Source: Eukaryota sp. TZLM1-RC (lineage: Eukaryota; Protista; Metamonada: BaSk clade). Taken from it: 64,000 nucleotides of DNA. The DNA lies in the NCBI GenBank assembly GCA_040285825.1, contig JAUPSS010000003.1, forward strand, positions 3,658,001 to 3,722,000. The letters run 5' to 3'. The notes under the pieces were generated by a model. The model saw only the letters and a program-made list of their open reading frames with translations. It had not been told where the DNA came from and did not search any database. This document shows, one piece after another, positions 33,800 to 61,440 of this stretch. A program made the position numbers and the translations under genes. Every line of letters begins with the position of its first letter. Positions within the stretch are counted from its first letter, which is position 1.

Positions 33800-36700
33800 C
33801 AAACTCCCTGCACAACAGCAAGAATCTTCTTCGTCGAAAACAATTATGAAGCCTCAGAATAGTAATATTGCAATTTCGTTCTCCCATTCGACAACATTGC
33901 TCTTCTTCTAATGCAATAGACAATCAATCAAATAACTTAATTACTCGAAAAACTAAATCAAGACCAAAATGTTCCATTTGCGGAATTAATGGTCATAATT
34001 CAAGGACTTGTAAAGAAAATAAAATTAATGCTTTAAAATTCCAATCAGCTAAAAACGTGCTTAACAGTTGTTTTCTTGATTCCAACAATGCAAAACTTAA
34101 AGCTAGTAATCACAATGCAAAAAATTTTGAAGTATCATTGTCCGAATATTTGCAATTGTCTGATGATCGTGAAAATTCTGCTTCAAGCCACAATGATTCA
34201 AATTTTAATGTGAATACATGTCCTTTTTCCCAGAAATCCATTAATGAAGTCAATCACGGTAGACCATTGCTTTTTTGTCGATCCTGTAAAGCACAAGATA
34301 CTCGAAGAGCTCCAGTCAAGATTCCTGTTGAAATCAGTCCTGCTTCTTCAATCCCATTGTATGTTCAACTTCGTTCATTTACAAGTAAGTTGAAGAAAAA
34401 TGAATGGGACATAAGTAGTTTTTGGAAATTTTTTGCAAAAAAAATCTTATGTCAACAAAAATGCTGTCTAAAAACAAAATCCGATGCAAAAAGTCAAACA
34501 ATTAAAAAAACTATGTCTTCGAGGAAGGTACGGTGCTGGAGTTGAGTCAATATTTTCCTCTGATATTGCTAAACCAACTCTTGAAACAGTTGATAAATTA
34601 AAGAAGCTTCATCCTGAAGAAAATTTTGTTTGTCCAAAACCCAATATTTGTGAGTTTTGGACTAATAATCCAATTAATGCTTCTGAAGTTCTTGCTTTAA
34701 TTAAGAAGTTACCAAATGGTAAGGCTGCTGGACCATCAGGAATTTCGTTTGATATTTTAAAAACCGCCTGCAATAAGACACCTGAAATTGCAGATGAGTT
34801 AGCTTTTTATTTTCAACAATTGGTTTCATTGAAAGTTGTTCCTCCTCCTGAGCTTACTGCTGCACGTCTTATTGCTTTAGTAAAAGCTGGTAGTGATACT
34901 AAGCCTTCAGGAATTCGTCCAATTGCAGTAGGTGAATCTCTATCTCGTTTGTTTGCCTCAATTATTTTCAACAGAATTGTTAAAAAGGCTGGTAAATTTT
35001 TGTCGCCAATGCAATTTGGTATTCAAACAATTAATGGAGCGTCAGTCGCTGCTCTGACATCAGACTTGTTTTTTAACCTTAAAGAAAACAATTCTATTTT
35101 CAAGTTAGATTTTAGCAACGCTTTTAATAGTGTAAGAAGAAAAGCAATTTATGAAGTAATTCAAAAACATTTCCCTGAACTATCAAGTTATTTCTATTTG
35201 TTTTACGGTAAACCCAGTGATTTAGTATATGATGTTTTTTTCCTCAAGTCTTCATCAGGAGTAAAACAAGGGGATCCTTTAGGCCCATTATTATTTTGCA
35301 TAGCAATCCAAGAATCATTGATTGTTATCAATGAAAAATACCCTTTTCTAAAAATCGTAGTTTACATGGATGACATCTCCCTTATCGATCCTTTTAGTGT
35401 TGTCCAAAAAGCTTCAAATGAAATTGCTGAACAATATGAAATCATTGGTCTTCACTTGAATCCTAAAAAATGTTTATCAATTGGTAATGATTTCAAAGAG
35501 TATAAAATTAATAATTGTAAAATTCCTTTTACCAATTATTCACATGAAGCTTTTCGTTTTCTAGGATATTGGTTAAGAAATGTTGATGAAATTACTAAAA
35601 ATCTTAACGAAGTTGTTGCAAAACTTTGTAATGAGCTTCCATTAATTTCTGAATTAGAAATTGAAATACATATTAAATTTTTTATTTTAAAAATTTGTTA
35701 CTCCGGAAAATTACTCACTGATTGAGGTCGACAGTACCTTCATTGTCTATCGATTTTTGCCGATCATTTAATCAACTTCGTGCAACCTTCTTTGCTTCCT
35801 CACAAGAAGTGAATCCTGAGCTAATTCGAGCTCAATTGTTCTCTTCTTCACAATTCGGTGGTGTTGGCTTTACCAAATCCTCAATTCTTTGTCAAGCAGC
35901 TTTTGTTGGTGGTGGCAAAAATTTTATCTTTGAATTTGTTAATCGTTTCCCTGAAGATATTCATTTGCTTAGTCCATCATTTTCAAAATATTTGTTTGAC
36001 CTTGATGTTGCCATTAATAAAATTGCACCACAGATTTGGTGTCAATGTTTTCCCGACTCAGTTCAAGAGATTCCTCCACGAAATTTAGTTAATTTAAGGT
36101 ATTGTGTGAAGAAGCTTCAACAAAAACTGACAGTAACATTTGAAGGCTTGGATTATGAAGTACGTCTTGGCATGGCCAAGCACAAAAATCCCGCTTTTGC
36201 AAATTTTTTACTGAATGTTCGCGATAGTTCTGCTTCTTGTTTAATTAATCAAGTACCAAGAATTTATGGTTTGTTTCTCAATCACCCTTGCCTTTTATTA
36301 TCTATGCGTCTTCGATCCTTTATTTGGCCTGATAATCTTCCTCATGGATTAATTTGTAAATGTGGAAAGTCTGTCACTCCAGCCCATTTATTTAATTGTA
36401 ATCGATTTATTACTTTTAGATCAAAAGTGCATCATGCAGTTCGTGATCAGCTTTATTGTATGTTTAAATCCTACAAGTTTGAATCTTTTTTAGAACCTTT
36501 GCTTTCAAATTTGGCTGATGAATCTGACAGAAATTTTTTTTGGTCACAGCCGTGGTGATGTGCTAGTTCCCAGACTTGATGGATCAATGATCATTATTGA
36601 TGTCAGATCTACTGATGTATCAAACAGCTCAAATGAAAAACTGGCACAATCTTATAACTCACCTTTACGAAGAGCCGAAGAAGCGAAATTTATTAAGTAT

Positions 36701-38929: not shown

Positions 38930-41900
38930 TTTCCTCCCACCCTTCATACCCTCTCTGTTTTTCGTTCGCTGTTGTACTTGTTCCTGTGGCTTTAAAAATG
39001 CATCACGCATTAAGTTCACCTGAGTGGGATCATGACGCTGAGTTTCGTAGCCGTCCCGTGATGGTTCCAACTTCACCTCACTCATCCCCTCTTCCTACAC
39101 CACTTTCTCTCTCTTCATTTTCGAGTAAAAAAATTCGGAATTAATATCACCAAAAAATAGTTTTTTCAGAAATCATTCCAAATTATCTCAGGTGCCTACA
39201 GATCCTTCTCCCTTAGGCCAAAACACTATTTCAAGATCCCAAAAAGCCAAAGTTTCAATGAAAAATTCTTTTTCTACTTCTGCTGCACATCCTAATAAAC
39301 TATCAAGAAAGAAAAGTATTTATAAATGTAGTTATTGTGGTGATTCGTCACATAATATTTTGACATGCAAAAAAAAATTAAAAGATACTGAGGAACTTAA
39401 TACAGAAAAATTTGTCATTGAATCGTCCTTACCAAATATTGAGCCTCAAAATTCAAACATATTTTCGGAAGATTTGAATTCTAATTTTTTACCTTATCTA
39501 ACGTTAATCATGATGTTCCTGTTCATGGTTCTAACACTTGTATTTTTTGCTCAAAAGCTTTCACTGAGTCAGTCAATGGTCGGCCAATTTTATTTTGTAA
39601 ATCCTGTACTGCCGTAGATACCTTAAGACCCCCTGTAAAAGTTCTTGTGGACACCAGCCCTGCAAGTTCCATTCCTTTGTCTCTTGAAATGCGAAAATTT
39701 TCTTCTCAATTGACAAATAATAATAATTGGGCCATAACTGATTTGTGGAAATTTTTTGCAAAAAAAGTCTCTTTTGAAGAAACAACATAAAACGGGACTT
39801 TCAACGTCATGTGCACAAAAAACCAAATTGGCGAGAAAAATGTGTCTTAGAGGTCGCTATGGTTCAGCTAAAAAATCTATTTTCTCCTCTCAATTGGCTG
39901 AGCCTTCTGATGACACAGTAAGTGAATTGAAAAACCTTCATCCTGCAGAAAATTTCTGTTGTCCGAAGCCAAGAATTTGTAAGTTTTGGACTGATGCTCC
40001 GATTAATTCATCTGAAGTACAGACTGCTATCAACCATCTTCCTAAAAACAAAGCAGCAGGTTTTATCCTTCGTTTGATGTTTTGAAATCCGCTTGCAGGA
40101 AAGCTCCAGAAATTTGTGATGACCTTGCAGAATATTTTCAAAATCTGGTTTGTCTCAATACCATTCCTCCGACTGAATTACTAACTGCTCGATTGATTGC
40201 CTTGGTAAAATCTGGAAATGGTAAGAAGCCAGATGGAATTCGTCCAATTGCCATTGGCGAATCAATTACTCGTCTTATTGCATCAATTGTCTTTAATCGT
40301 GTTGCTTCCAAGGTTGCAAAATTTTTAGCACCTTTTCAATTTGGAATTTAAACAATGGATGGTGCATCAGTTGCTGCTTTGACTTCTGATTTATTTTTTA
40401 ATTCTAATAATCGGAATTCTATTTTCAATTTAGATTTTAAGAATGCTTTCAATTCTGTACATCGAAGTGCAATTTATGATATTATCCAAAAAGAATTTCC
40501 AGAATTATCCAGCTATTTTTATTTATTTTATGGTAAAACTGGAGAACAAATTTATGAATCTTATACTCTATTTTCGACTTCTGGAGTTAAGCAAGGTGAT
40601 CCCCTTGGGCCATTACTCTTCTGTTTAGCAATTCACAAGTTTTTGATTCATTTAAGTAATCGTTATCCGATGTTGAAGATAGTAGGATACATGGATGATA
40701 TTTCAATTATTGGTCTTTTAAATGTTTTAAATGAAATCGCTTCCGAAGCCTCACTTTTTGTCAGAGATATTGGTCTTTTGCTTAATGCCGACAAGTGTCT
40801 CCTCATAGGAAATGTAAAAGATAGATTAACCATTGATGGTGTTGAAATTCCTTTTCTTAACTATTCCTCAGATGCATTTCGTTTCCTAGGATGCTGGCTT
40901 GGAAATGTTCCAAAAATTACTGAAGAATTGAGTAATCTTTTGATGAAATTGGGTTCTGAACTTGACACAATTTCGTCATTTGAAATTGAGAAACATATTT
41001 AGTTTTTTATCTTAAAAATTGTTACTCCGGTAAAATTACTCACATTTTAAGAACAACATCTCCTGATATTTCACGTGAGCTTTGCCACTCATATAACTAT
41101 TTGAGAACAACAATTTTTGCATCTTTGATTGATGTCAATCCTGAACTAATTCGAAGTCATGCATTTTCACCATCTAATTTTGGTGGAATTAATTTCACTA
41201 CATCGTCTATTCTCTGTCAAGCTGCTTTTCTTGGTGGAGGGAAAAATTTTGTTTTTGAATTTTGCAACCGTTTTCCCAATGATGTTAATTTATTTTTTTT
41301 TCAATATAATATTTATTGAATTTGCACACTTAATTAAATTAACTCATAACTAATGGGACGACTATCATTGAACCAAGCTTTCCTCTACAAAATCTTGATC
41401 TGCTTGCTGTCTAGCTAAAGCTTCTCTTATTCGATTGAAAAACCGTGGTAATCTATTAATAATGGCAAATTGAATCCGTGAACGCCATAAAAAAATATCA
41501 AATCTTTTCATTGTTTTTTCTTGCACCATCTTTTGGAAGTCATTCAAAAAAGTTTCTGCTTCATCTGATAATCTTCCATTTATCGAAAATGGGAAAGCAA
41601 TAAAAACCAGCTGTGTATTTCTATCGACATTAGCCTCTTCAATATCTTTATCATATTTTCCATGTTTCTCTTTTGCTTTAAAATCCAGAGCAGCCACAGG
41701 ATTAAGTTTTCTTCTGTGAACCAAAGTATCATTTGCAACATTACATGAGACAAAGTCAACAATAGCTTCAGAATTGTCAATCCAATCACAGTATACATCA
41801 CCTCTATCATCAGAACCAAAATTATTCAGAGAAAGTGTTTCCTTCAGCAGGGGCTCTTTGATACACGATATTCTTGCAGTTTGTGCCATATTGAAAACAG

Positions 41901-42885
41901 TGTCTCTAACAGCATCATGTAATGAAGAACGATAAGTTATCAATTTAGAGTAATTCAGAGCATGGCGCAAAGTGAGTTGAGGTGAATTCGAACAAATACA
42001 TTTTTCTTTTGATAATAATTGATTAATGGGGATATTCAAATATAATCTCATTTTTGTTACAAATGCTTCATTAGTGGCACACAATCCAAATCTTCGTGGT
42101 ACAATGGTTACAAAAAGTGAAGAAGTTGATGACTTATTTTCACAAACACCCTTTTCCAATAACAATGAGTGAAGAACTTGATTTAAAACAGCCGAGCTGC
42201 ATATATTATTATAAAGATCTTTTTCATACATTTCAGTCAATCGTTTCATAAATGTAATTGTTATGTTAATTTATTGAATTTTACAAGCAATTATCTAAAA
42301 GACCTACAAAATCCTCTTGATTGTTTGCCCCCTGAAATATGGGGTAAATGTTTTCCCGACAATGTGCAGGAAATACCATCTAAAACACTAGTTAATTTGA
42401 AGTATTGTGTTAAAAAATTGCAACAAAAGTTAACAAAAATTTTTGAAGGCTTGGATTTGAATGTTCGTCTTGGCTCGGTCTAAAAAAGATAATCCCGTTT
42501 TCGCAAATTTTTTTTAGATGCCCAAAACAGTTCCTCTTCGTGTTTAATTACTCAGATTCCTCAAATTTATGATCTTCTTTTAGATGATACCGAATTTTCT
42601 TGTACAATGCGTCTTCGTTGTTTCATTTGGCCTGATAACGTGCCTCATAATTTAATTTGTAAATGTGGATCAAAAATATCACCAAATCATCTATTCAATT
42701 GTAAACATTTTATTACTTTCCGATCAAAAGTTCATGAAGATGCAGTAAGAGATCAACTCTATTGTATGTCAAAATCACATAGAATTGTTTCCTATTTAGA
42801 ACCACTACTCTCCCGTTTGGTTGATGAAGATACTTTGAATTCTTTTGGTCGAAATAGAGGTGATTTAATGCTTGAAGGTCTTGAA
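38930..42885 (+). mobile_element. CRE-like RT-RLE element (stops and frameshifts) carrying a nested insertion
   Basis: CSYCGDSSHNILTC; GIRPIAIGE, LDFKNAFNS, QGDPLGP, YMDD; CCHC and RGD. Interrupted at 41295-42262. Confidence 0.9.
41295..42262 (-). mobile_element. 5'-truncated family A retro-insertion with poly(A) and 13-bp TSD; open 294-aa CCHC-RLE ORF (41365-42249)
   Basis: atgttaatttatt at 41282-41294 and 42263-42275; T-run at the 3' end; LHDAVRD, RGDV..DF..KxxKY. The host frame FPNDVNL|LNFTSNYL is restored on removal. Confidence 0.9.
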
Positions 42886-42971
42886 GACATGTTTAATAAA
42901 TATTGAAATAAATAAAAATTTAAAAAAAAGATTTTGCGTTTTGCAAATTTTCCGCCAAAACTTCTGAGTTA

Positions 42972-45900
42972 ATGTCATCACTCAACTTGTGCTTCTTACT
43001 TCTCATCAGTTTCACTCTAGTTGCTGCGCATCAATGTTCTGGATATCGCAACTTCACAGTGAGTTTTTTGTCACCAACATGTGGTACGGTCATTGAAGCT
43101 AGTGAATCAGTTCCTTTCTCGATCAGCTTTCAGTTTTCCTGTACGTATTTGCAAATCGGAAGCAATGTGCTTGATCTTGATGTTGATCTTGATGTCGATC
43201 AGTTCCCTGAAGCAATGTCCTTATTTTGTTCACCAGATTTAACCGATAACCAAACCAATATTCTGAAGCCTCTTGGTGCCAGCTTTTATCCTCAATCACA
43301 GGACGGAATCACCACAGTCGATGTTCAATTTGATCTTTATGCACTACCTGACCTGGATCAAACAAGCTACCAATGTTTTTTCGATCTTCAAGAGTGGCAA
43401 TGTGGAAACTCCCTTCTACCTCGTACCAGCTGGTTTTCAATTGTTGTTGATAACTTGGGTTCAGCAACGGAACTGAATTGTACGCCTCCTCTTTCTGATG
43501 TACTTTGCTCACCTTATCCAGATTTTGGACTCAGTCTGCCGAATGATTTCTTTGATAAGGACCGCAGCAATTTCAGCAGTTCTTCAATCGGCGTCTTTGC
43601 TTCGTTGACTGAAGCTAATACAGTGCTCATAGAACTTCATGGATCTCTGACTACGTCTGAAAAACCTGTAGGTATTGACATTAATCATTTTGAGATCGAA
43701 CAGGTAAAGTATCTTCTGGACGACTCTTCTTTAATTACAGTACAATCTCAACTTCACAATCCTTTGAATACATCTCTTCTTTGGTCACACGGAAGCAATT
43801 TGTTACTATCCTTCAGTACCACCGAAGGAACTTCATCTTCAAATCAGCATATTCAGCTTTCCTCTCATGAAATTCAACCCTTGTTTGACGCTCTTGATAC
43901 AAGCACCCTTAGGATAAGGTGTGTAGAGGAACGCGTGTTCTTGCCCTATTCCACTTACGATGACGATGACTACCGATCTTCACTCAACGCTTCCTTTCTA
44001 GAACAATATATTCAATCCAATAATCCGCCTAGTGGGTATTCAGCGTTCTTCACCTTCGATAGCCTTGCCGTTTCTTTTTTTTATTCAGACACAATTTGGA
44101 CAGCAATTCTGCCTTCCCGTTTTTGTCCAACGGGTTCTACTGCTTTTAGGTTTTCTCAACTATTGGAACAGTCGGATGGTGAAGCTTTCGCGTTTCAAAA
44201 TGGTGACAGTTTTTTCTTTTTTGATTTTACCGAAATATTTTCTGAACATACACTTAAGTTCTCTCTTTTTCACTCCACTTTTGGAGAATTATTCACAAGT
44301 ACTTTTTCTCATGACAACAACTACAAAAGTAAAGATGCATTTAATTCCACATTTAGCTCAAACTTCACTACTAACCTCTTTAAATTCTTGGATCAAGATT
44401 ACCCTGCTGTTGCCTTGTCGAGTGATCTTCCCCTTGGTGATATAACTGATCACATTAATGATCTTGTTTTTGTACCAAAAGAGGCTATTGAATTAGGGGA
44501 AAATTGTGGAGGTCTATTCTACAGTCCAATTTCTTGGTGGCTGGAGTTTGATTGTAATTCAAAAAGTTCATGGCAGTGTCTCCGTAATGGGGTTGGAAGG
44601 TTAAGTCATGATCCCAGTCTTAGGTTTGGAAATATGGTTAAGAATTTTTCTTCTCTTTTTGAAGGTAACCTGGATGGAGATAAGTTATTCCATATTGAGA
44701 GAACAACTGATTCTTTAACCATGCAATTGAATCCTATTGATCCAGATGATGTTATTTTCTCCTTTTCCTTACATCGTGACGATTTGACCTTTAAGCAACC
44801 ATCTGTTGGTGATTTTGGTGTTTCGGTTTCAAACATCAATGGATCTTTCATTTCTGTTGATTCGTTTGTTTACAATGTCGGAACTTTGAATGATTCAATA
44901 ACCATTTCTCTTGAATGTGATTCTGAATTTGTTGATTCTAGTGATCCTATTTCATCCCATCTCAATCCATCAGAAGCTTTATATCATTCTTTCATATTAG
45001 CCTCAAATGGATTAATTGATCAAACATCCATTAATTGCAAAGTGTTTTTTAGCTTTTCTCAGCTCCCCTTGTGGGATAATGATGACAAATACGCTGAAAC
45101 AGAATTCATTATTTACCCAATTGATTCATCTGCTTGTTTTTGACAGTGGTTTTTCTTTTATCACTGCTGATATAGGGAATTTTAACCTTTGCGATTATTT
45201 AGAATTACCACTATTAAAAATCCCACAATATCTTTTTGTTAACCTCACCATCCCTTCTCAATTCCCAGACCCGACTGCAAACCCCATTTTCAAGACAAAA
45301 TTCTGAGTTATTATACTATATCATTTGATAGTGACCACTTTACCTCCGATACATTAATCTCGCTCAAACTTGATGTTAATTCTTGTAAGAATTGTGAAGA
45401 CTATGGAGTCATTGTTGAACAGCAATACTTTAATAACCATGAAGTTGATGAATTGCTTACAATAGACAATCCTAATTCAATTTCTCTTGCTATTCTTGTT
45501 CCTTTTGTTGATCAAAAGTCACTCCACGTGACTTATACCATTGGTTTGCACAATGTAGATAATTGTATCTGTTATGATGAAGTTGAAACTAGTTTTCTAT
45601 TATCTACGTCAACTAATATCGAATGTCCTTTCATTGTTGATGCTCCCAGCCTTCAACTCCCAATGAATTCTGGATTGTGGATCGATGGAAATGTCTTTTC
45701 AAGTGTTGAAACAGATTTTGTTGATTTGGATAATGAAGTAGACTTTGGATTGTTTAATCTCAATACCCAGTCAAGTTTTGTACATACAATGGAGGGCTTT
45801 CTCCTGCAGAGAAGTAACATTTCATTTACACTTGTAAATCTTGGAGACGGATTGGCATCATCACGGTTTTCAATAGAAGTAATTACCTCAGCTGAATCCA

Positions 45901-48821
45901 AGTTTCATTCATTATCAGATGTTTTTACTTTGGGACAATCAACAAACCATTGCTCAACCGTAGAAAGACAACATAAGCTCAAATCAGTTTTAGATTGTGT
46001 TATTTCGCCCCTTGAATCTCTTGATTTAGGAGTAGTTTTAACTTCCACATATTTAAGTGAATTCACGTTGGTCTTCTCAGTTGTAAATGAACACTCTCTT
46101 TGTATGAACAAGGATTATGGCCTTAATGTAACAGAAGTTATTCACACCAGGTCTTCATGCAACAAAAATCACCCACCAAGGGCAAAACTTGTTGTAGAGT
46201 TTGATGAAACTTTAACTCCAACTGACAATGGTTTTATGTCTACAATTGGAATTTCAAATCAAGGAAATGTGACGTCTTTTAGTAATATTTCTCTTTCTTG
46301 TACCGAAATAACTGATAGTTATGGAAAAGAAGGTGATAAATCGATTACATCTCTGTTGGAAAGGGACAACATTTCAATCGATTCTTTGACTGAAATCTCA
46401 GTTAATTTTGAATTGGTTGATGTGATGCAAGGGTCAGAAATACACTGTGAGATTAACTTGTTAGTCCAAAATGATCCTATTTTTGACCCTTGTACACCCG
46501 ACTTCAGAAGTGAATATATTCACACGATACCATGCATTTCTTCTATTATTCCGGAAACCATTCTTCACTTGTCTGACCAAAACCTCTGGTCGCAGTCGAA
46601 CTATGAATTTAATGGTCACCTGGGAACTGTTTTTGAACCAATGATTTTCCTTGAGAAGCCAGTTTACAATTATAAAGATCTAATCATTAGTATAAATTCT
46701 GAAGAATTCAATGTATTTGATTCCCGATTTGTCAATTCGTCTGTGGTTGTTTTTTCCTTCTTTATGAAACATAATTTTTCTGTCAAAGATCCAATCTTGT
46801 ATTTCAAGGTTTACATTGAAACTCAGCCAGAGTATGTTTGTTGTAATCAAGTTGAATGCAAACATAAGTACTTTAAAGACCTTTGGTTACGTCCTTCATG
46901 TCTAGATATCGCACCATTACCCCAACCTCTTGTACAGTCATTGGATTTTTTCAAAAGTCGCTCTATTTTTGATTACTATGCAAGCTTTCTGTTACAATTG
47001 TCAGTGGCATCTGAAACACAATTGCATATTTCAAGCATGATTTTTAATTATGGAGAGGATACTGGCAATTTTACGTTAAAAACTGAGTGTACTGTTTGGG
47101 GACTTTACAACGCTGAGCTTAGAGCACTGCACAAGGTGAAATTGCCCTTGTTATCTTCCCTGGTTGAACCCCAAAATAATTCATTTGTCGAGTATCTTTA
47201 CACTTTCGATGATTCTCTATGGGGTTTTCCTTTGCGATGTGTTGCTTATCTTCAAACATATCCCTTATATCCCAGTTTGGCCTACAACAGCTCTCAATGT
47301 TTGCTCTTTAAGGGAAACTATGCTGTAGCGGAGAGAGAACTTGAAATTCCTTGCCCATTCAAGTCGTCTATATTTAATTCTGTTGAAAATATACTGTTTG
47401 CAGAAAGGAACACATCGCATATAAGTTATGATTCACTGAATTCTTATACTTTTACTGGAACCATCGATCTCAATGAAGAAGAAATAATGTTTCCTGATAA
47501 TTTGAGACTAACAGCAACATGTTCACATCATTACACCATCATTGCACAAAACATCTCTATTGTACCGGCTTTTAAACATAGATTTGAGTTTGTGCTTGAT
47601 GTAGATATTGATCGGCAATATTCAACTTTGATTGGTAACTCAATTTCGTGTGAAATTGAAATTGAAACAAACAAACCGCGACATCCCTGTATTATACGAA
47701 ACCAGAGGTCCATTGATCACTATAAGCACCGTATTGAAACAATTTTGCTTTGTAACGGATATATTGGAATTACTGATATTTCACTAGTGGACATCATATC
47801 TATCACATCCCGTCCTGTGATATATGGACTTAATTCGATCGGATTTCACTTGAATATGTTTATAAAGGAAGAACATTTAGCGGATTTCAATGGTTTAGGG
47901 TTTTCCTTGAATGGGCAGTTTTCAGGACATTATTTTGAGCATCAAGACTATCAATGTACAACATCTACGTTGTTGAGCAACGTTGTTTGTTCTCAGTTTG
48001 TTGAGGTTAGTCCAGTTAGAGTCCATAGACGACCACCTAAGGGCGCTGTTGTCTATTTTTCTCAAAATATATCAACGTCCTTAAGCAGGGATGAATGTGC
48101 AGTGAGAAAAGCCCATTCAACGAACACTTTTACTCACACTTCCAGTTTTGACTGTCCTATCATTGGTTCATTATTTGAACTCAAATTTGAATTACAGTTG
48201 ATTAGCCTTAAAGAACTTGAAATTTCAGTTTCTTTAAACTCTACAAATCATTATCAACATTACTTCTCTGCAAATTATTTTGAGTCTATCAGGAGTTTGA
48301 AAAAGAACATCATTGTTGCTGGTAATCTGTATCTTTCCACCAGTCCCAATTGTCCTAATTTTAGTTCAAACGAAGTTGAATTTAGTTTGGTGGAACCAAG
48401 AACTACCACGGTCTTCAATATGGATACAGTTCCGGTGCACCATCAATGTTTTGTTAATTTGTCCTGCAATGTGTCCCCCAAGGGCGATACATTAGATGGA
48501 CTGTTGAACAATATATGTATAGAGGATAATAAGATTTATGCTCCATTTCTCTCTTCTACAGTTCTGTCTGGTACTGCAAAGTTTGATCTCACTGAAGCTG
48601 TTCATGTTAAATTAGATTCAATGGGATTTTTCTTTCATTTGTTTTCTGAAAAGGTTTTACTTTTTTCTGCTCTGTCTGCAGTGTTGCTCGGTATTGTAGT
48701 TAGTGTCGGTTGGATTTATACTCGAATGCGAAAGATCAACAGAGCAATTCAACAAAGAGATGCACACCGTTTCAAATGTACTTACAATTCCATGTTTTCA
48801 ATGTCCACCTTGTATAGATGA
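42972..48821 (+). CDS. HAP2/GCS1-like type I membrane protein, long form (~1949 aa if four homopolymer indels at ~45140-45290 are corrected)
   Basis: Signal peptide, HAP2-like core, multiple NxG..C Ig-like repeats, TM VLLFSALSAVLLGIVVSVGWIY. Indels versus copy 2 (+1,-1,+1,-1) net to zero. Confidence 0.7.
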
Positions 48822-48944
48822 CATTGATGATTAAACATTTTGAATTGTTTGTACTGTTTGTATTATTAAATAATTATGTATCATAGCAAATAAAAAAGAA
48901 ACTAAAAATGACTCATATATTTAAAATATATAAATATAGAATTG

Positions 48945-49589
48945 TTACATAAAATCGTCTTCGACCTCATCTAGAGATTTCCCAACAAAATCTTTATTAG
49001 TGAAGGTTGTTGAAGTTAGAGCCATTATACTCGAATAAGATCTCAGTTCATTCTCTTCTCTCTGTTTTTTTACAAGTTCCTCTTGTTTCTTCCTTTCCAA
49101 CAACCGTTCACGGCGCTTCTTCTGGTCTAGTAGATTTATACGGTTCTCTAGTTGAACACACAGGTTGGGAAACTCCTCTATCCTCGTCTTATTAAGCCTA
49201 TTGACAATTGAGTTGTTTCTACACTCAATGGTGATGTATCTATTGAGTGAAGGATCCTTAAACGATACTTGACCTGCAACCATGTGGGACTCTTTCAAAA
49301 GATTGGATGCAGGAGTAAAAACGATGCGGACGTTGTTGGTTTTATTACCTTTGATGGAGTTTGCTTTGGTTAATTGGGCACAATCTTGAATGACTTCTTG
49401 TGGTACTTGGTCAATGGTTTTATCATCGGGAAGACGAAGGTATATATGAGCAGAACTCATTTCAGAAACGTGAAACCACCAATCCACATCCCAAGCATAA
49501 CGAATAAGAGTTTCGTTTTCAATCTTGTCCCTGCCTGAGTAGATAGTATACTCAATGCCATCATTGGCAACAGAACAGAAAAAGTACAT
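48945..49589 (-). CDS. CCDC25: CCDC25 / NFACT-R (DUF814) protein
   Basis: GRDKIENETLI, WFHV..SSAHIYLR, DCAQLTKANSIKGNK, GQVSF, C-terminal EDDFM. Start at MYFF (49589). Confidence 0.93.
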   Translation of the reverse strand: MYFFCSVANDGIEYTIYSGRDKIENETLIRYAWDVDWWFHVSEMSSAHIYLRLPDDKTIDQVPQEVIQDCAQLTKANSIKGNKTNNVRIVFTPASNLLKESHMVAGQVSFKDPSLNRYITIECRNNSIVNRLNKTRIEEFPNLCVQLENRINLLDQKKRRERLLERKKQEELVKKQREENELRSYSSIMALTSTTFTNKDFVGKSLDEVEDDFM

Positions 49590-50699
49590 AGTTGGAGGAA
49601 GTTGATAACTCAAGGTGAAGTCAAAGATTTTCCAAAAAGATTTCTGTACACAAACAACAACTTTCATATTTAAGAGATAAAAAGCTTCTCTCGAAAAATG
49701 CAAGTCGCCAATTCTCTTGAAAATGAGGAGTATGTGGCTCAATGCAGTTAAAAAATCTATTATGGTGTTAATGCTATCTTTTTGTTCAGCATATATGTAT
49801 ATTAACCAATAAATAAAGGCGAATATTACACAATAATTCTTGTCTTCACAACTTTAGTTAGTCACTTTTTTTGTTAACTGTGTTATTTTCAAAATTTAAA
49901 ACTGTTCTATGGAAGTTTTATGATAAAAATTCAGCTATTTTATTGCACTCCAAGAAGCAGTTTCAAGAAGTTTAAGAAGTTCCTTCACACAAGCTTCAAC
50001 ATTGCAATATTCATCATCTCAAAGTACGTGTTATCAAAATGATTGAAAAAATAGACTAAGAGATTAACCAGTCTCATTTTCTCAACTGACTTAAACTGAT
50101 TTTTGAAGACTGTAATCTCACACCATGAGGAATTGCAGAAATTGAATTGATGAACTGTTCGTAAGATGCGTTTAGTGTGAATACAACAGGGTCATTGGCC
50201 TTAAGTTTATTCAGATTCAATCCGACTGTCATAGACAGAAATAGGTAGGTGGTAGGTGGATTTTGCTTAAAAGTTTCAGAACTAGGTGGATTTTATATTT
50301 ATCCCTTTTCTTTTTCTTTAGGGTCCACACTGAATTTCTGTGGTGATTGCAGATGGACTTTTGCAACATCCAATGTGTATTTAGATGGTATTGTACAAAT
50401 GTACATTTTATAAGAATGTTTGTGTCCCCGCGGAAGTATATAAAATATCTTGATCATCAATGTTATAAAATCTACGGAAAAATGAAAGTAGAAGCCACTG
50501 TTATTGATTTAAGATAGACTATTGAATAGGCAAAACATGCTTCGAAAATATCATTGACAGATGGATAAGATTAATTAAGAGGTACGGCAAGGTTACTGAG
50601 GTCACAACTACGTAGTTTTGATAACTATCTGAAGAACAACAGAAAAGGAGGAAGGTGTAAATGTAAGTTTGCAAATTTTCCGCCAAAACTTCCGAGTTC

Positions 50700-53600
50700 A
50701 TGTCATCACTCAACTTGTGCTTCTTACTTCTCATCAGTTTCACTCTAGTTACTGCGCATCAATGTTCTGGATATCGCAACTTCACAGTGAGTTTTTTGTC
50801 ACCAACATGTGGTACGGTCATTGAAGCTAGTGAATCAGTTCCTTTCTCGATCAGCTTTCAGTTTTCGTGTACGTATTTGCAAATCGGAAGCAATGTGCTT
50901 GATCTTGATGTTGATCTTGATGTCGATCAGTTCCCTGAAGCAATGTCCTTATATTGTTCACCAGATTTAACCGATAACCAAACCAATATTCTGAAGCCTC
51001 TTGGTGCCAGCTTTTATCCTCAATCACAGGACGGAATCACCACAGTCGATGTTCAATTTGATCTTTATGCACTACCTGACCTGGATCAAACAAGCTACCA
51101 ATGTTTTTTCGATCTTCAGGAGTGGCAATGTGGAAACTCCCTTCTACCTCGTACCAGCTGGTTTTCATTTGTTGTTGATAACTTGGGTTCAGCAACGGAA
51201 CTGGATTGTACGCCTCCTCTTTCTGATGTACTTTGCTCACCTTATCCAGATTTTGGACTCAGTCTGTCGAATGATTTCTTTGATAAAGACCGCAGCAATT
51301 TCAGCAGTTCTTCAATCAGCGTCCATGCTTCGTTGACTGAAGCTAATACAGTGCTCATAGAACTTCATGGATCTCTGGCTACGTCTGAAAAACCTGTAGG
51401 TATTGACATTAATCATTTTGAGATCGAACAGGTAAAGTATCTTCTGGACGACTCTTCTTTAATTACAGTACAATCTCAACTTCACAATCGTTTGAATACA
51501 TCTCTTCTTTGGTCACACGGAAGCAATTTGTTACTATCCTTCAGTACCACCGAAGGAACTTCATCTCCAAATCAGCATGTTCAGCTTTCCTCTCATGAAA
51601 TTCAACCCTTGTTTGACGCTCTTGATACAAGCACCCTTAGGATAAGGTGTGTAGTGGAACGCGTGTTCTTGCCCTATTCCACTTACGATGACGATGACTA
51701 CCGATCTTCACTCAACGCTTCCTTTCTAGAACAATATATTCAATCCAATAATCCGCCTAGTGGGTATTCAGCGTTCTTCACCTTCGATAGCCTTGAGGGT
51801 TATTTGTCTTATTCAGACACAATTTGGACAGCAATTCTGCCTTCCCGTTTTTGTCCAACGGGTTCTACTGCTTTTAGGTTTTCTCAACTATTGGAACAGT
51901 CGGATGGTGAAGCTTTCGCGTTTCAAAATGGTGACAGTTTTTTCTTTTTTGATTTTACCGAAATATTTTCTGAACATACACTTAAGTTCTCTCTTTTTCA
52001 CTCCACTTTTGGAGAATTATTCACAAGTACTTTTTCTCATGACAACAACTACAAAAGTAAAGATGCATTTAATTCCACATTTAGCTCAAACTTCACTACT
52101 AACCTCTTTAAATTCTTGGATCAAGATTACCCTGCTGTTGCCTTGTCGAGTGATCTTCCCCTTGGTGATATAACTGATCACATTAATGATCTAGTTTTTG
52201 TACCAAAAGAGGCTATTGAATTAGGGGAAAATTGTGGAGGTCTATTCTACAGTCCAGTTTCTTGGTGGCTGGAGTTTGATTGTAATTCAAAAAGTTCATG
52301 GCAGTGTCTCCGTAATGGGGTTGGAAGGTTAAGTCATGATCCCAGTCTGAGGTTTGGAAATATGGTTAAGAATTTTTCTTCTCTTTTTGAAGGTAACCTG
52401 GATGGAGATAAGTTATTCCATATTGAGAGAACAACTGATTCTTTAACCATGCAATTGAATCCTATTGATCCAGATGATGTTATTTTCTCTTTTTCCTTAC
52501 ATCGTGACGATTTGACCTTTAAGCAACCATCTGTTGGTGATTTTGGTGTTTCGGTTTCAAACATCAATGGATCTTTCATTTCTGTTGATTCGTTTGTTTA
52601 CAATGTCGGAACTTTGAATGATTCAATAACCATTTCTCTTGAATGTGATTCTGAATTTGTTGATTCTAGTGATCCTATTTCATCCCATCTCAATCCATCA
52701 GAAGCTTTATATCATTCTTTCATATTAGCCTCAAATGGATTAATTGATCAAACATCCATTAATTGCAAAGTGTTTTTTAGCTTTTCTCAGCTCCCCTTGT
52801 GGGATAATGATGACAAATACGCTGAAACAGAATTCATTATTTACCCAATTGATTCATCTGCTTGTTTTGACAGTGGTTTTTCTTTTATCACTGCTGATAT
52901 AGGGAATTTTAACCTTTGCGATTATTTAGAATTACCACTATTAAAAAATCCCACAATATCTTTTGTTAACCTCACCATCCCTTCTCAATTCCCAGACCCG
53001 ACTGCAAACCCCATTTTTCAAGACAAAATTCTGAGTTATTATACTATATCATTTGATAGTGACCACTTTACCTCCGATACATTAATCTCGCTCAAACTTG
53101 ATGTTAATTCTTGTAAGAATTGTGAAGACTATGGAGTCATTGTTGAACAGCAATACTTTAATAACCATGAAGTTGATGAATTGCTTACAATAGACAATCC
53201 TAATTCAATTTCTCTTGCTATTCTTGTTCCTTTTGTTGATCAAAAGTCACTCCACGTGACTTATACCATTGGTTTGCACAATGTAGATAATTGTATCTGT
53301 TATGATGAAGTTGAAACTAGTTTTCTATTATCTACGTCAACTAATATCGAATGTCCTTTCATTGTTGATGCTCCCAGCCTTCAACTCCCAATGAATTCTG
53401 GATTGTGGATCGATGGAAATGTCTTTTCAAGTGTTGAAACAGATTTTGTTGATTTGGATAATGAAGTAGACTTTGGATTGTTTAATCTCAATACCCAGTC
53501 AAGTTTTGTACATACAATGGAGGGCTTTCTCCTGCAGAGAAGTAACATTTCATTTACACTTGTAAATCTTGGAGACGGATTGGCATCATCACGGTTTTCA

Positions 53601-54722
53601 ATAGAAGTAATTACCTCAGCTGAATCCAAGTTTCATTCATTATCAGATGTTTTTACTTTGGGACAATCAACAAACCATTGCTCAACCGTAGAAAGACAAC
53701 ATAAGCTCAAATCAGTTTTAGATTGTGTTATTTCGCCCCTTGAATCTCTTGATTTAGGAGTAGTTTTAACTTCCACATATTTAAGTGAATTCACGTTGGT
53801 CTTCTCAGTTGTAAATGAACACTCTCTTTGTATGAACAAGGATTATGGCCTTAATGTAACAGAAGTTATTCACACCAGGTCTTCATGCAACAAAAATCAC
53901 CCACCAAGGGCAAAACTTGTTGTAGAGTTTGATGAAACTTTAACTCCAACTGACAATGGTTTTATGTCTACAATTGGAATTTCAAATCAAGGAAATGTGA
54001 CGTCTTTTAGTAATATTTCTCTTTCTTGTACCGAAATAACTGATAGTTATGGAAAAGAAGGTGATAAATCGATTACATCTCTGTTGGAAAGGGACAACAT
54101 TTCAATCGATTCTTTGACTGAAATCTCAGTTAATTTTGAATTGGTTGATGTGATACAAGGGTCAGAAATACACTGTGAGATTAACTTGTTAGTCCAAAAT
54201 GATCCTATTTTTGATCCTTGTACACTTGCCTCTGTATCTGCTTTTACATTTGCGATTCCTCCTCATAATTCACCTATCAAACCTTTAGCTATCGTCATTG
54301 TTCCTGTTGTTCTCGTTACTGTAGTAGGAAGTGTTTTCTTTATATTGAAGAAATCAATCAAGAAATCAATTGTGTCTGAGCTTGTTTCATTTTCTACAGT
54401 GCCTGTTAGTGTTGAAGTTGTTCCAGATCAGCCACAACCAGATGATTCCCAAGTTCCTGTTCCTCCTACAACTTCTGCATTTGTACGTTCAGAAGCTGAT
54501 TACACTAATGCAAAGGGGACAGTCACACCAGAAGCTGAGGATAATTCACGTTTAATGCCTGCATTGTCTCCTGGTAATGTTTTGTTAGGAAGATCACCAA
54601 AAATTGAACCTGCGAACTGGATCCAAAATTCACCAGTTAATGGCCCTGTTCACTCTAGTCCTCACGCATCCGCAAGAGCTAGAAGACCTCAATTAGCGTG
54701 GCATCATCCTGTACCAAGATAA
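50700..54722 (+). CDS. HAP2/GCS1-like type I membrane protein, short form (1340 aa) with Pro/Ser-rich cytoplasmic tail
   Basis: Intact ORF; same ectodomain start as copy 1; TM LAIVIVPVVLVTVVGSVFFIL followed by KKSIKK. Confidence 0.75.
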   Translation: MSSLNLCFLLLISFTLVTAHQCSGYRNFTVSFLSPTCGTVIEASESVPFSISFQFSCTYLQIGSNVLDLDVDLDVDQFPEAMSLYCSPDLTDNQTNILKPLGASFYPQSQDGITTVDVQFDLYALPDLDQTSYQCFFDLQEWQCGNSLLPRTSWFSFVVDNLGSATELDCTPPLSDVLCSPYPDFGLSLSNDFFDKDRSNFSSSSISVHASLTEANTVLIELHGSLATSEKPVGIDINHFEIEQVKYLLDDSSLITVQSQLHNRLNTSLLWSHGSNLLLSFSTTEGTSSPNQHVQLSSHEIQPLFDALDTSTLRIRCVVERVFLPYSTYDDDDYRSSLNASFLEQYIQSNNPPSGYSAFFTFDSLEGYLSYSDTIWTAILPSRFCPTGSTAFRFSQLLEQSDGEAFAFQNGDSFFFFDFTEIFSEHTLKFSLFHSTFGELFTSTFSHDNNYKSKDAFNSTFSSNFTTNLFKFLDQDYPAVALSSDLPLGDITDHINDLVFVPKEAIELGENCGGLFYSPVSWWLEFDCNSKSSWQCLRNGVGRLSHDPSLRFGNMVKNFSSLFEGNLDGDKLFHIERTTDSLTMQLNPIDPDDVIFSFSLHRDDLTFKQPSVGDFGVSVSNINGSFISVDSFVYNVGTLNDSITISLECDSEFVDSSDPISSHLNPSEALYHSFILASNGLIDQTSINCKVFFSFSQLPLWDNDDKYAETEFIIYPIDSSACFDSGFSFITADIGNFNLCDYLELPLLKNPTISFVNLTIPSQFPDPTANPIFQDKILSYYTISFDSDHFTSDTLISLKLDVNSCKNCEDYGVIVEQQYFNNHEVDELLTIDNPNSISLAILVPFVDQKSLHVTYTIGLHNVDNCICYDEVETSFLLSTSTNIECPFIVDAPSLQLPMNSGLWIDGNVFSSVETDFVDLDNEVDFGLFNLNTQSSFVHTMEGFLLQRSNISFTLVNLGDGLASSRFSIEVITSAESKFHSLSDVFTLGQSTNHCSTVERQHKLKSVLDCVISPLESLDLGVVLTSTYLSEFTLVFSVVNEHSLCMNKDYGLNVTEVIHTRSSCNKNHPPRAKLVVEFDETLTPTDNGFMSTIGISNQGNVTSFSNISLSCTEITDSYGKEGDKSITSLLERDNISIDSLTEISVNFELVDVIQGSEIHCEINLLVQNDPIFDPCTLASVSAFTFAIPPHNSPIKPLAIVIVPVVLVTVVGSVFFILKKSIKKSIVSELVSFSTVPVSVEVVPDQPQPDDSQVPVPPTTSAFVRSEADYTNAKGTVTPEAEDNSRLMPALSPGNVLLGRSPKIEPANWIQNSPVNGPVHSSPHASARARRPQLAWHHPVPR

Positions 54723-54767: not shown

Positions 54768-56444
54768 CTACAAATTTTTACAAATAATTGTACAATCAGC
54801 CAACTTCATAACCTCACAATCCTGAAAGTAACCAAAATATGAATCAGTGGTGCCAAAAAGAAACCACAAAATTCCAGATGGAAAAATCAAAACTGAAACA
54901 ATAGCATTGGCTAATAGCAGATAAAAAATGGTGTTTTTCATATTTCCAAACGCAAATTCAAGTTTGAAAAGTTTTAATAAACTGATCTTATCGTGGTAAT
55001 ACTCTAGAAATTGACCAATGAAGACAAGAATACCCAATAAAGGGAAAAAAGAACTACCAACTGATAAAAGAAACATTCTATAAATAACTTCTACATATTC
55101 ATCACTGGTGTCAAATTCAGATTTTTCGTCCCGTTTTAGCACAAACTTTTTGAATAAAGGCCACAACCACTGGACTATATTGACCAGTACAATATCAGTA
55201 ACTAGCAACCAAAAAATTTGAGATGCCATTGAATCAAACCCACAGCCGGTTCCAGTGATGTTTGATTCATAGCACAAACAACCATCCACTCTGAAAGAAT
55301 TTTCCTGCCTTTTATCAGCCCAAACTAAGAATCTTGAAAGATACAACACACAAACCTGTGCTAGCTTGAGTACATAAACATGGAATAACCTAGCGGCATA
55401 TTTGCCAGTCCAAGTTTTGTGTTTTTCAAAATCGACAATTTTTTTGGCCAATTTTTTCCACATATAGTTGGAGCAAACGACATAAGATGAGACCAAAATT
55501 TGGCCAAGAGGAGCATCTGCCAAACGTGAAATAGTGATCCAGTTCACAATAGAGGAAATAACCAAAGTTAAAAGCCACAGAATGAATCCTACAAACAAGC
55601 GAACAGATCGAATCAACCAATGAATGTTTTTGTTATCTGTTATTACATCAAAAGAGGTATTTTTGACCGATCGTGATCTTGAAAGCAGGCTGCCTTGACA
55701 AGTGTTTCTATCTTCCTTTTCATACTTGGAGAGAGTTATTTCATGATGAACCAAGTACCTAAAAGGAAGAGCAAAAGTTAAAGCCGCATTGGTAACAATA
55801 CTTAACAGAAATATCCACCGAATTTCCCCATAATAACGTGCAGAAGAAAACAATAGTGGCAAAGTTGCAATTCCTTCATAAGAAGTTGTATGTTCAAGGA
55901 TTTCAGCATAAATACCCCTAAAATTAAGATCAGGAAAGTTGCTTGTATTGTATTGAAGTAAAGAAGGAATTAGAACCAGCAATCCAGAAAGAACAAAGTA
56001 GAGACAGTAAAAGTAAAGAAATTTGATGAAAGAAAAATAAAGAGAAATACCAATGCCGTGATGTCGTCTAATAGAGCGTAAACTGGAAGAAATACCAAGT
56101 TTGGATAACTTCTTATCTTTGTCACCAGTATCATCATTAGTTGTGGGAGAATAAGAGGCTGGTCCACCATCTACAATATCTGGACAGTCAAGATCAGATT
56201 CGTTGACATAAGTGACTTCAAGGCCATCATCCACATTCTTTTGATTTGGGTAGTTACCTGAACCATCATGATACTCCACATTGACATCGCAATGAGAATT
56301 CCAAATAGTGGGAAACGTGGAGACGAGTTGTAACTGCTGACTGGGAATAAGAACTGGGCCATAATCCGAATAGTAGAGCTGGAAACCAGGGGGTACTTGG
56401 GATGGATCAAAGTTATGAATGCGCGAGCTGTGAGAACTACCCAT
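54768..56444 (-). CDS. Transmembrane channel-like (TMC) family protein
   Basis: GIGISLYFSFIKFL, VDFEKH, C...SQIFWLLVTD, KSEFDTSDEYVEVIY..GSSFFPLL; multiple TM segments. Confidence 0.82.
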   Translation of the reverse strand: MGSSHSSRIHNFDPSQVPPGFQLYYSDYGPVLIPSQQLQLVSTFPTIWNSHCDVNVEYHDGSGNYPNQKNVDDGLEVTYVNESDLDCPDIVDGGPASYSPTTNDDTGDKDKKLSKLGISSSLRSIRRHHGIGISLYFSFIKFLYFYCLYFVLSGLLVLIPSLLQYNTSNFPDLNFRGIYAEILEHTTSYEGIATLPLLFSSARYYGEIRWIFLLSIVTNAALTFALPFRYLVHHEITLSKYEKEDRNTCQGSLLSRSRSVKNTSFDVITDNKNIHWLIRSVRLFVGFILWLLTLVISSIVNWITISRLADAPLGQILVSSYVVCSNYMWKKLAKKIVDFEKHKTWTGKYAARLFHVYVLKLAQVCVLYLSRFLVWADKRQENSFRVDGCLCYESNITGTGCGFDSMASQIFWLLVTDIVLVNIVQWLWPLFKKFVLKRDEKSEFDTSDEYVEVIYRMFLLSVGSSFFPLLGILVFIGQFLEYYHDKISLLKLFKLEFAFGNMKNTIFYLLLANAIVSVLIFPSGILWFLFGTTDSYFGYFQDCEVMKLADCTIICKNL

Positions 56445-57275
56445 CACTACAGATATGGTGAATCAAAATGCTATTCTTGGACGCAGAATGTCTAAAAATA
56501 GATAACAAATTTATTCAATCCCATCATCTCCAATATTAAACAAGTGGCCCTTCAACGTTGCATGAACGATTCATTGCAATCAGAAACACTGATTTTACTG
56601 AAACAAGAACAGCTGAAAGTGATGTTCTGACTCATTTCTTGTATATTCTGCCAAAAATGTGTATGTACCAAAAATAAAATAGCAACTATCCAATTATAAA
56701 ATTACAACCACCTACGAAAATTGACACTTCTCTCTTCTTCTTTGAAGGGTATAGTTAAAAGCACTGTGAGACTGAAAACTATTCTAAAAATTAAACTATT
56801 CATTCTACTCCCTTATTCTATCTAAATTGTTCAGCATTTGATTCTGTTCAAGTGTATACCATGAATATTGTAAAATTGCAACGTGTATTTTGTTTGGCGA
56901 AATTAAATCTTTTTAAAATGGACTACATTGAAATTTTAGCAGAATAAGGATCGGAAAAAGTATTTTATTTAGTACCAGTATGATGGTTTGGGCTGTTCGT
57001 TAGGCTTAGCTATATCTTTAGATGTAATGAGATTTATTACCAAGAGAAAATGTAATCTCTCTTCTGATACTAATAAGCGGAACGTAAACTAATGAACTAT
57101 TAATACAAAGCTATTTTAAACTATTCAAGACAAGCACTGCCTTTTCTTCTCTCTTGAGCGACGAGCACTAGAAGCTCTAGTCATATGGGAAGAAGTACCT
57201 GACTTGGATCGCTTCCTGGGAGCAGCGGATTAAGTACAACAACGTGTTTTGGAAGTCTTGATAAAGACCCTTAAA

Positions 57276-59430: not shown

Positions 59431-60452
59431 TTTTTTTAACAGAATTTCTACTGAAGCAAGGGACTATTTGAAGCCTTTCCAATTTGGTATAAAAACTGTT
59501 GAAGGTGCTTCTGTTGCTTCAATGACTTCAGATGTTTTTTTCAATAGTCAACAACATCAATATATTTTCAATTTGGATTTCAAAAATGCTTTCAATTCTG
59601 TGAAACGTAATTGTATTTTTGATGTGATTCTTCATAATTTTCCTGAACTTTCTGCATATTTTTATTTATTTTATGGAAAAAAATCAGACATAATTTTTGA
59701 CTCCTTTTCCCTTGAATCTTCTTCTGGTGTGAAACAAGGTGATCCTCTTGGCCCTTTGCTGTTTTGTTTGGCTATTCATAATATTATTAAAATGACACAA
59801 CAAGATTTCCCTGATTTGCGTATTGTTGCCTATATGGATGACATTTCTATTATTGGTTCTTTTGAAAGCATTTCCAGGGTTTCTGAAGACATTGCAGCGA
59901 AATACAAAGAAATTGGTTTAGCTTTGAACCCATCTAAATGTCTCTTGATTGGTAGAGAAAATCAATCTTTGATGATTGGTGGAGCTCATATTCCTTTTAT
60001 CAATTATGACCAACAAGCTTTTAAGTTTCTTGGATGTTGGCTTGGCAATTTGGATGAAATTTATTCCCAGTTAAACAATTTATTGGAGAAGTTTGACAAG
60101 GATCTTAGTTTTATTGCTGAATGTGACATTGAGAAACACATCAAATTTTTTATTTTAAAAATTTGTTATTCTGGAAAATTCACTCATATTTTAAGGTCAA
60201 CTCCCCCATCCGTATCTCTCAATTTTTGCAGATCTTTTAACAAACTTCGAGTCAAATTTGTTTCTTCTTTATTAGAAGTAAATGAATCTTTAATTCGAAG
60301 TCATGTATTTTGTTCAGCAGATTTGGGTGGCATTGGATTCACCAAATCTTCGATTCTGTGTAAAGCAGCATTTTTGGGAGGTGGTAAAAATTTTGTTTTT
60401 GAATGTTTCCAAAGGTTCCCTTTTGATGTTCATCTGATCAATGGTGAATCAA
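59430..60452 (+). mobile_element. CRE-like RT fragment (open 345-aa frame)
   Basis: QFGI, LDFKNAFNS, GVKQGDPLGP, AYMDD, GGIGF, GGGKNFVFE. Confidence 0.92.
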
Positions 60453-61440
60453 ATTTTAAAATAAGATTAGGATTTATTCCAAGAATGCAAACAAGATTAC
60501 TATAAACAACAACAATGCAAAGCAATATTCTAGATAAGTGATCACTGACAAAATGAAGGTAGATTCTCACTATTTACGGGTTCATGAGCACGTACATTGT
60601 GAAACTCAGTGATACTTAAAAGTATTGAGTTAAAATAACGCGGTAGAGCCTTAAAGAGTGAGAAAACAATTCTGTTCTTCCAAATAAGTTGATCAAAAGA
60701 ACGTCCTGAGTCTTTTAAGAAACTGCCTAAATCATTTAAGAAAGATAGTCCTTCCCTGCCTGAAGTACCAAAAATAGAAATTCCAATTGGAACAAAAACG
60801 ATGTTTCTGCCACGTTGTTTGTTCAAACGTACAAGTAAATCATTATACTTCGAGTGCTTGCTCCTTTCCGCATTCTTGAGGGTTGATTCAATGTCGGAAG
60901 ACGAAGACAACTTCCAAGGAGAAACAGTTGTACAATCATTAATTAATTCCTGGCCGCTACGCCAAGCACATTGAATATCACCTCTTTTTTGACTTTGAGC
61001 AAGCTGCATTTCATCAAAAACTGGTTCCAGTCGTACTGGATGATGGGCACTCTTCAACAAATCATAAATGCAATCGCGAACGGCATTGTGAATAATCGAC
61101 CTCTTCTGAGTGAACTTCCTACAAGATAAGACATGAGTATAGGAAGCAACTGCTCCACATTTACAACGAATATTTGTTAAACATTGAGGGGGAGGTAAGT
61201 TCAAACGTAGTCTCATAATTGTTAAAAACTGGGAATCGGAAAGCAACAGACCAAAACGGCGAGGTACTTGGGTTATTAGGCAAGATGCACTGTTGATAAA
61301 AGAACCCTTATCGCAAAGAGAGGATAGAAATGTTGCAAAGGAAGAATCACCTGAATTGTTAGCCAAGCTAATTTGTTCTTCTAGTGATTCAGCTTCGAGA
61401 GCATTAATCAACTTCTTTTGCAGTTTAGGGACAGTTCTCA
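60453..61440 (-). mobile_element. Antisense CCHC-RLE 3' part of a CRE-like element (open 289-aa ORF, 60542-61411)
   Basis: CKC..HVLSC, IHNAVRD, RGDI..DCT, AERSKHSKY, FVPIGISIFG. Confidence 0.88.

Follow-up and report, generated by a model that had tools for sequence, protein, structure and literature searches.

What are two neighbouring genes that encode the same giant extracellular head on two different membrane anchors, and do they belong to the fusexins, the class II fusion proteins that include HAP2/GCS1? The question is raised by a stretch of 64,000 nucleotides (the window; contig JAUPSS010000003.1, positions 3,658,001 to 3,722,000) from the genome of Skoliomonas litria TZLM1-RC, which NCBI lists as 'Eukaryota sp. 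TZLM1-RC'. This metamonad of the BaSk clade is anaerobic, free-living and feeds on bacteria. A sequence-only reading had taken the products of the two genes, here called gene A and gene B, for giant, divergent HAP2/GCS1-like fusexins with additional immunoglobulin (Ig)-like domains. With moderate confidence, we favour another explanation: A and B are a pair of modular surface proteins of type I topology, found in skoliomonads alone, that act as receptors or adhesins, have two conserved anchor types and are kept partly identical by gene conversion. Kinship with HAP2 is unproven, having no sequence or profile support and fold evidence limited to one common Ig-like domain. Proteins are labelled P0001 (gene B), P0002 (the NCBI model of gene A), P0003 and P0004 (the family members of Skoliomonas sp. 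RCL) and P0005 (the HAP2 of RCL).

Two neighbouring genes with a common ectodomain

The open reading frame (ORF) listing and a repeat alignment identify gene A and gene B as real neighbouring loci on the + strand, both encoding large single-pass surface proteins (Table 1). A direct repeat is 99.0% identical over 3,560 columns, with 30 substitutions and 4 indels, so the two genes have residues 1-1175 in common; it starts merely 32 bp 5' of both ATGs and ends at codon 1175, right after a Cys-Thr that closes a module. Past this codon the sequences are unrelated: gene A continues with 774 private codons, placing its transmembrane helix at about residue 1892, and gene B reads through 15 residues into its transmembrane helix and then a tail of 125 residues (14% Pro). 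The hydropathy scan gives each protein one transmembrane helix and a hydrophobic N-terminus resembling a signal peptide, in keeping with type I topology. In all of this the sequence-only reading was right, having described two single-pass proteins with signal peptides that agree over their first 1,175 residues and then end in alternative C-termini, one with more ectodomain and a short tail, the other with a Pro-rich tail. Sequons for N-glycosylation number 16 in gene B and 17 in the second ORF piece of gene A.

The sizes once given for the two proteins (about 1,949 and 1,340 residues) stand for gene B, which is intact, but not for gene A as assembled, in which four indels interrupt what would be a frame of 1,949 codons. 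These indels, at positions 45137, 45215, 45233 and 45286, lie in T or A runs and split the gene into two pieces; the NCBI model P0002 (1,883 aa) bypasses all four as an 'intron'. Because the sites are homopolymeric, the shifts sum to zero, the surrounding 1.6 kb contains not one substitution between A and B, and the assembly was made from Nanopore R9.4 reads with Illumina polishing (PMC11316075), the indels probably arose in base calling and escaped correction by polishing because the region is duplicated. Searches used the two pieces of gene A separately, with intact gene B as the query for all full-length work.

The locus might also be evolutionary debris, with gene A a frameshifted pseudogene, gene B a chimera left by recent segmental duplication, and neither functional. 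The four frameshifting indels suit this explanation at face value, as do the end of a retroelement ORF with an A-rich tail (window 42607-42930), about 40 bp upstream of the gene A start codon, and coding differences between A and B that are close to neutral (21 nonsynonymous, 7 synonymous). It has to contend with ORFs of 1,340 codons in B and 1,122 codons in A that stay open in a region of about 35% guanine plus cytosine, and with indels whose pattern fits Nanopore error; together with the evidence from RCL given below, this makes it very unlikely.

Within the first 600 codons lie 26 of the 28 coding differences between A and B. We make no claim of positive selection on the head, as the ratio of 21 to 7 is roughly neutral and a cluster of six changes may be base-calling error. 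In that cluster (window 44067-44081), six substitutions in 13 bp alter five successive codons, 366-370; the B version resembles the RCL orthologue and the A version is a T-rich run, which could reflect base-calling error or micro-conversion.

Table 1. Features of gene A, gene B and the gene between them (window coordinates; residue numbers refer to gene B unless stated).
Feature	Position	Strand	Description
Gene A	42972..48821	+	Two ORF pieces as assembled
Gene A, first ORF piece	42972..45143	+	723 codons; stop made by the first indel
Gene A, second ORF piece	45453..48821	+	1,122 codons, up to the natural stop
Four single-base homopolymer indels in gene A	45137..45286	+	+1, -1, +1, -1, net 0; from alignment with gene B
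Duplicated tract, copy 1	42940..46497	+	32 bp upstream and codons 1-1175 of gene A
A-specific C-terminal part	46498..48821	+	About 715 aa of ectodomain, transmembrane helix at 48645-48719, 33-aa tail
Gene B (P0001)	50700..54722	+	Intact ORF of 1,340 codons
Duplicated tract, copy 2	50668..54225	+	32 bp upstream and codons 1-1175 of gene B
N-terminal 8-Cys domain	50763..51239	+	aa 22-180; 8/8 Cys kept in RCL P0003; beta strands in the model
Phe/Ser-rich, Cys-poor region ('domains I/II' of the sequence-only reading)	51240..52523	+	aa 181-608; no assigned fold; pLDDT about 20-35 in both models
Ig-like beta-sandwich ('domain III' of the sequence-only reading)	52524..52850	+	aa 609-717; conserved C649 and C689
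Cys-bounded, beta-rich modules	52851..54224	+	aa 718-1175; last ~308 aa are the module triplicated in RCL P0004
Gene B transmembrane helix	54270..54353	+	aa 1191-1218; hydropathy scan
Gene B cytoplasmic Pro-rich tail	54354..54719	+	Last ~22 aa (54654-54719) near-identical to the RCL P0004 C-terminus
NFACT-R / CCDC25-like gene	48945..49742	-	Unrelated, between the paralogues; PF05670 E 4e-29; 950-bp divergent upstream region with gene B

Relatives in Skoliomonas sp. RCL

An exhaustive HMMER search with residues 1-1175 against 1.84 billion cluster representatives found two homologues only, P0003 (E 3e-37) and P0004 (E 9e-33), both from Skoliomonas sp. RCL (TZLM3-RCL). As the matches lie solely in RCL, the family is confined to skoliomonads and has two members in each of the two species; word-indexed protein searches, run with residues 1-1175 of gene B and with the alignment of B and P0003, returned the window's own genes only. 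P0003 aligns collinearly with residues 1-1175 (27% identity, 27 aligned Cys), and a 3-Cys motif inside the region of residues 181-608 (C512, C528, C536) is kept in both P0003 and P0004. Skoliomonad small-subunit ribosomal DNAs (SSU rDNAs) differ by up to 12%, against which 27% protein identity may be ordinary; fast evolution of the family is not claimed.

Both anchors of the S. litria pair have counterparts in RCL. The P0003 C-terminus and the next RCL ORF are together collinear with the private part of gene A (z-score 5.1, 0 of 200 shuffles) and end in a transmembrane helix with a short tail, so that RCL carries an A-type gene. P0004 ends in a transmembrane helix and a Pro-rich tail homologous to that of gene B (BLASTP E 4e-18), near-identical over the last ~20-22 residues, and RCL thus also carries a B-type gene. 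All members therefore combine a collinear ectodomain and a conserved Cys pattern with either an A-type or a B-type anchor, and both anchor types are older than the split between S. litria and RCL. At RCL locus L001:13995-14130, the annotated P0003 stops just past a T7 homopolymer and the adjacent frame continues into an ORF (14125-15642) with a transmembrane helix at its end; a homopolymer error has probably divided a single A-type gene into the two that are annotated here. Evolutionary debris is hard to reconcile with the retention of both anchor types in RCL, tail-end motif included, or with the same kind of break recurring at the T7 run. A large RCL neighbour gene of ~1,065 aa is unrelated to the family.

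Within RCL, the two paralogues have 1,815 bp in common at 98.5% identity, in inverted orientation. Just upstream of this tract P0003 and P0004 are 33% identical (E 6e-11), and farther upstream no similarity between them is detectable. The paralogues are therefore old, whereas the near-identical tracts stem from recent conversions or segmental replacements, which took place independently in each species and over different segments.

The ectodomain is regarded as modular because P0004 contains three copies of a 924-bp module and the breakpoint in S. litria falls at the end of a module. The recurrence of an NxG...C unit along the chain, which the sequence-only reading had pointed out, is visible as a pattern but not significant: a BLASTP self-comparison, hidden Markov models (HMMs) of the modules and hhalign (E 0.06, probability 0.9%) detected no internal repeats of the family protein. 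A match of P0004 to Pfam PrgX_C_TPR (aa 843-913 and the repeats; E 3.5e-7, just above the cutoff) was rejected as a repetition artefact, summed over three near-identical copies.

The proposed kinship with HAP2/GCS1 and the favoured explanation

If the family were an extremely diverged offshoot of HAP2, residues ~160-608 would correspond to class II domains I and II without their Cys scaffold and residues 609-717 to domain III, followed by extra Ig-like modules before the transmembrane helix. Tandem duplication of HAP2 would have given rise to such proteins, which would still drive or assist fusion, or have been repurposed. The RCL genome supplies a positive control for this proposal in its canonical HAP2 (P0005, 691 aa), which the HAP2 profile PF10699 (515 positions) recognizes at E 3.1e-28 over profile positions 25-510 and which matches solved HAP2 ectodomains. 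The same profile has no match in gene B or the gene A pieces at E<=1, nor in P0003 or P0004 at E<=10. Comparison of the family with RCL HAP2 gave a best BLASTP E of 0.24 and hhalign probabilities of 0.4% and 0.1%, and phmmer and profile searches of the PDB sequences returned no HAP2 and nothing relevant.

The sequence-only reading had built its case on collinear motifs, which proved no better than chance: aligned locally to residues 160-620, domains I and II of RCL HAP2 reach a z-score of 0.7. One alignment of the family with HAP2 at z = 3.8 was set aside, being out of register with the proposed mapping and not reproduced with P0003. Among the motif blocks, the first (FAFQNGDSFFFF) is not kept even in the RCL orthologue, whereas the 3-Cys block and the blocks around residues 599-689 are conserved within the family. 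The disulfide-rich scaffold of domain II is likewise missing, with 5 Cys in the 409 residues 200-608 (1.2%) versus 12 in the 331 residues 20-350 of RCL HAP2 (3.6%). Nor does the domain III-like unit lead into a stem and membrane anchor: the sandwich ends at residue 717 and the transmembrane helix begins at residue 1191 in B and about 1892 in A, leaving 470-1,170 ectodomain residues between them. The heads also differ between the RCL paralogues, although a conserved fusion machine would be expected to keep its head, and RCL already has a canonical HAP2 in addition to the two family members. With this RCL HAP2 as query for a HAP2 in S. litria, the word-indexed search returned only the query itself.

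AlphaFold models of residues 1-1175 and 250-760 have a mean predicted local distance difference test score (pLDDT) of 31.5 and 33.1, respectively, and failed because they could draw on only about three effectively distinct sequences. In the longer model, the best part is the N-terminal 8-Cys domain (pLDDT 55-64), and beta strands are modelled through residues 573-1165. The sandwich at residues 609-717 (pLDDT 43-56) has HAP2 domain III as its top or near-top structural match, within 1 Z of the unrelated sandwiches of BBS9, transglutaminase and FixG-type proteins. An Ig-like sandwich thus does stand where domain III had been placed, but every alignment to HAP2 or Fsx1 is restricted to domain III. 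The model suggests that residues 609-717 are a genuine Ig-like module and that HAP2 domain III is nearest to it in shape, a lead and not a proof of membership. Taken with the negative profile, alignment and Cys results, this makes descent from HAP2 unlikely. The claim of a giant HAP2-like fusexin, which if true would be a striking addition to the fusogen superfamily, is not carried by the evidence.

The favoured explanation, a pair of surface receptors or adhesins, agrees with the fallback of the sequence-only reading and is drawn from the architecture. The ectodomain would consist of the N-terminal 8-Cys beta domain, a Cys-poor region of ~430 aa and then a chain of Cys-bounded Ig-like modules acting as a stalk of variable length; we infer both the Ig-like nature of most of the stalk and the receptor function. 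Type A pairs a long stalk with a short tail, and type B a shorter stalk with a Pro-rich tail that ends in a conserved motif and is probably the handle for signalling or sorting. In both species, long tracts of A and B are kept at 98-99% identity by gene conversion or segmental duplication, so that S. litria presents one and the same head on two different anchors. Most probably the proteins serve in adhesion to, or recognition of, another cell, prey or a substrate at the cell surface, with membrane fusion less likely.

Several points weigh against this explanation. Both AlphaFold models stay at a pLDDT of ~32, which leaves more than 80% of the protein without an assigned fold, and the term 'adhesion or recognition receptor' is generic and drawn from architecture alone. 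The single confidently shaped domain has HAP2 domain III at the top of its matches and an RCL member adjoins HAP2; on both counts the family may be linked to the fusion machinery. Gene A as assembled, taken at face value, is a pseudogene.

Genomic neighbourhoods and comparison with known systems

In RCL, ~15 kb hold, in order, HAP2, a MORN gene, the B-type gene, a TALE homeobox gene (Homeobox_KN, E 4e-13), NAC and the A-type gene. HAP2 begins 1.7 kb away from where P0004 ends, and the two family genes flank the TALE homeobox gene. The cluster spans L002:8759-19575 on contig JAUPST010000013 and could be a sex-related neighbourhood; the proximity of HAP2, TALE and the family is a lead only.

This arrangement raises a special case of the favoured explanation, in which A and B are a pair for sexual recognition or adhesion that works with HAP2, as FUS1/GEX2 do or MAR1 in Chlamydomonas, in a mating-type-like neighbourhood. 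Besides the RCL gene order, it would suit this case that each species has exactly two paralogues and that these carry converted tracts, as would the retroelement-rich locus of S. litria and the similar build of known gamete adhesion proteins, which are single-pass and species-specific, with Ig-like domains or long disordered tails (PMC13601591). The S. litria window, however, is not syntenic with the RCL locus and contains none of the RCL neighbours; neither a sexual stage nor cell fusion has been described for Skoliomonas; and adjacency in one compact genome could be chance. The upstream regions of the S. litria genes have no k-mers or motif in common with those of the RCL genes or HAP2, and filamin or FUS1-type sequence signals are absent. 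We rate this special case as rather improbable, and give the same low credence to the broader form in which the pair is a skoliomonad gamete-recognition or adhesion system that acts with HAP2, or is itself derived from HAP2, in a mating-type-like neighbourhood with the TALE gene. If true, it would give free-living metamonads without a known sexual cycle their first candidate locus for sex recognition.

The surroundings in S. litria are different: the NFACT-R gene lies between the paralogues, and a TMC/anoctamin-like gene and retroelement relics lie at the flanks. The TMC/anoctamin-like gene (window 54768-56447, - strand) encodes a 559-aa multi-pass protein convergent with gene B, with weak matches to Anoctamin (E 1e-7) and TMC (E 2e-4). 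ORFs for RVT_1 reverse transcriptase are found at 627-2081, 34484-36558, 40355-41002 and 59468-60505. Short dispersed repeats pair 8775-9105 with 28906-29234 (95%) and 10879-11158 with 41312-41590 (86%), and a satellite with a 462-bp unit (5.5 copies, 97% match) occupies 61440-64000 and runs past the end of the window. A 213-aa ORF at 14099-14740 (- strand) has a Cas12f1-like TNB domain (E 4e-6) and may be a relic of TnpB/Fanzor type; a related domain occurs in a 1,560-aa RCL gene together with a Peptidase_C48 domain (L001:16929-21611).

The family is unannotated, has no known domains and is restricted to one lineage; two species that diverged deeply have both retained its two anchor types, which gene conversion keeps partly identical. 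The A/B arrangement acts, in a genome poor in introns, as a route to 'isoforms' without splicing. Protists commonly have orphan Ig-like surface proteins; what lifts this family above the ordinary ones is the RCL neighbourhood together with the domain III-like module, and the cluster of HAP2, TALE, A and B in RCL is a concrete lead to the sexual biology of these anaerobic flagellates.

Among known systems, HAP2/GCS1 (PF10699; PDB 5MF1, 5OW3, 7LR3, 7P4L) differs from A and B in its profile and sequence and its Cys-rich scaffold, neither of which was recovered here, as well as in the long ectodomain that follows the domain III-like unit in A and B and in the divergence of their heads between paralogues; the low-confidence models showed no domain I or II. 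FUS1 and GEX2 are gamete adhesion proteins with filamin-type Ig-like chains (PMC13601591): like them, A and B are single-pass, probably made largely of consecutive Ig-like sandwiches and species-specific, although their association with HAP2 consists of the RCL gene neighbourhood only. FUS1 and GEX2 have nothing that corresponds to the large Cys-knotted head or to the 430-aa non-Ig region of A and B. Pfam gave no match to Filamin or any other domain, and filamin, FUS1 and GEX2 are absent from the top 50 structural matches, in a library that PDB 9QS0 may postdate.

Arrays of macroglobulin (MG) domains, as in alpha-2-macroglobulin and complement, offer another comparison. Foldseek aligned stretches of 160-350 columns to tandem MG domains, at low template-modelling (TM) scores and from a low-confidence model; A and B carry no thioester or other signature of that family, and the aligned stretches fit a chain of beta-sandwiches. 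The MTA and MTB genes of Tetrahymena are adjacent paralogous mating-type genes that encode large single-pass surface proteins with segments partly common and partly different. The HMMER search found no sequence relationship between them and A and B, and nothing at the present locus suggests programmed rearrangement or multiple alleles; in organization, however, A and B resemble MTA and MTB as adjacent paralogues with common and differing segments, lying head-to-head in RCL.

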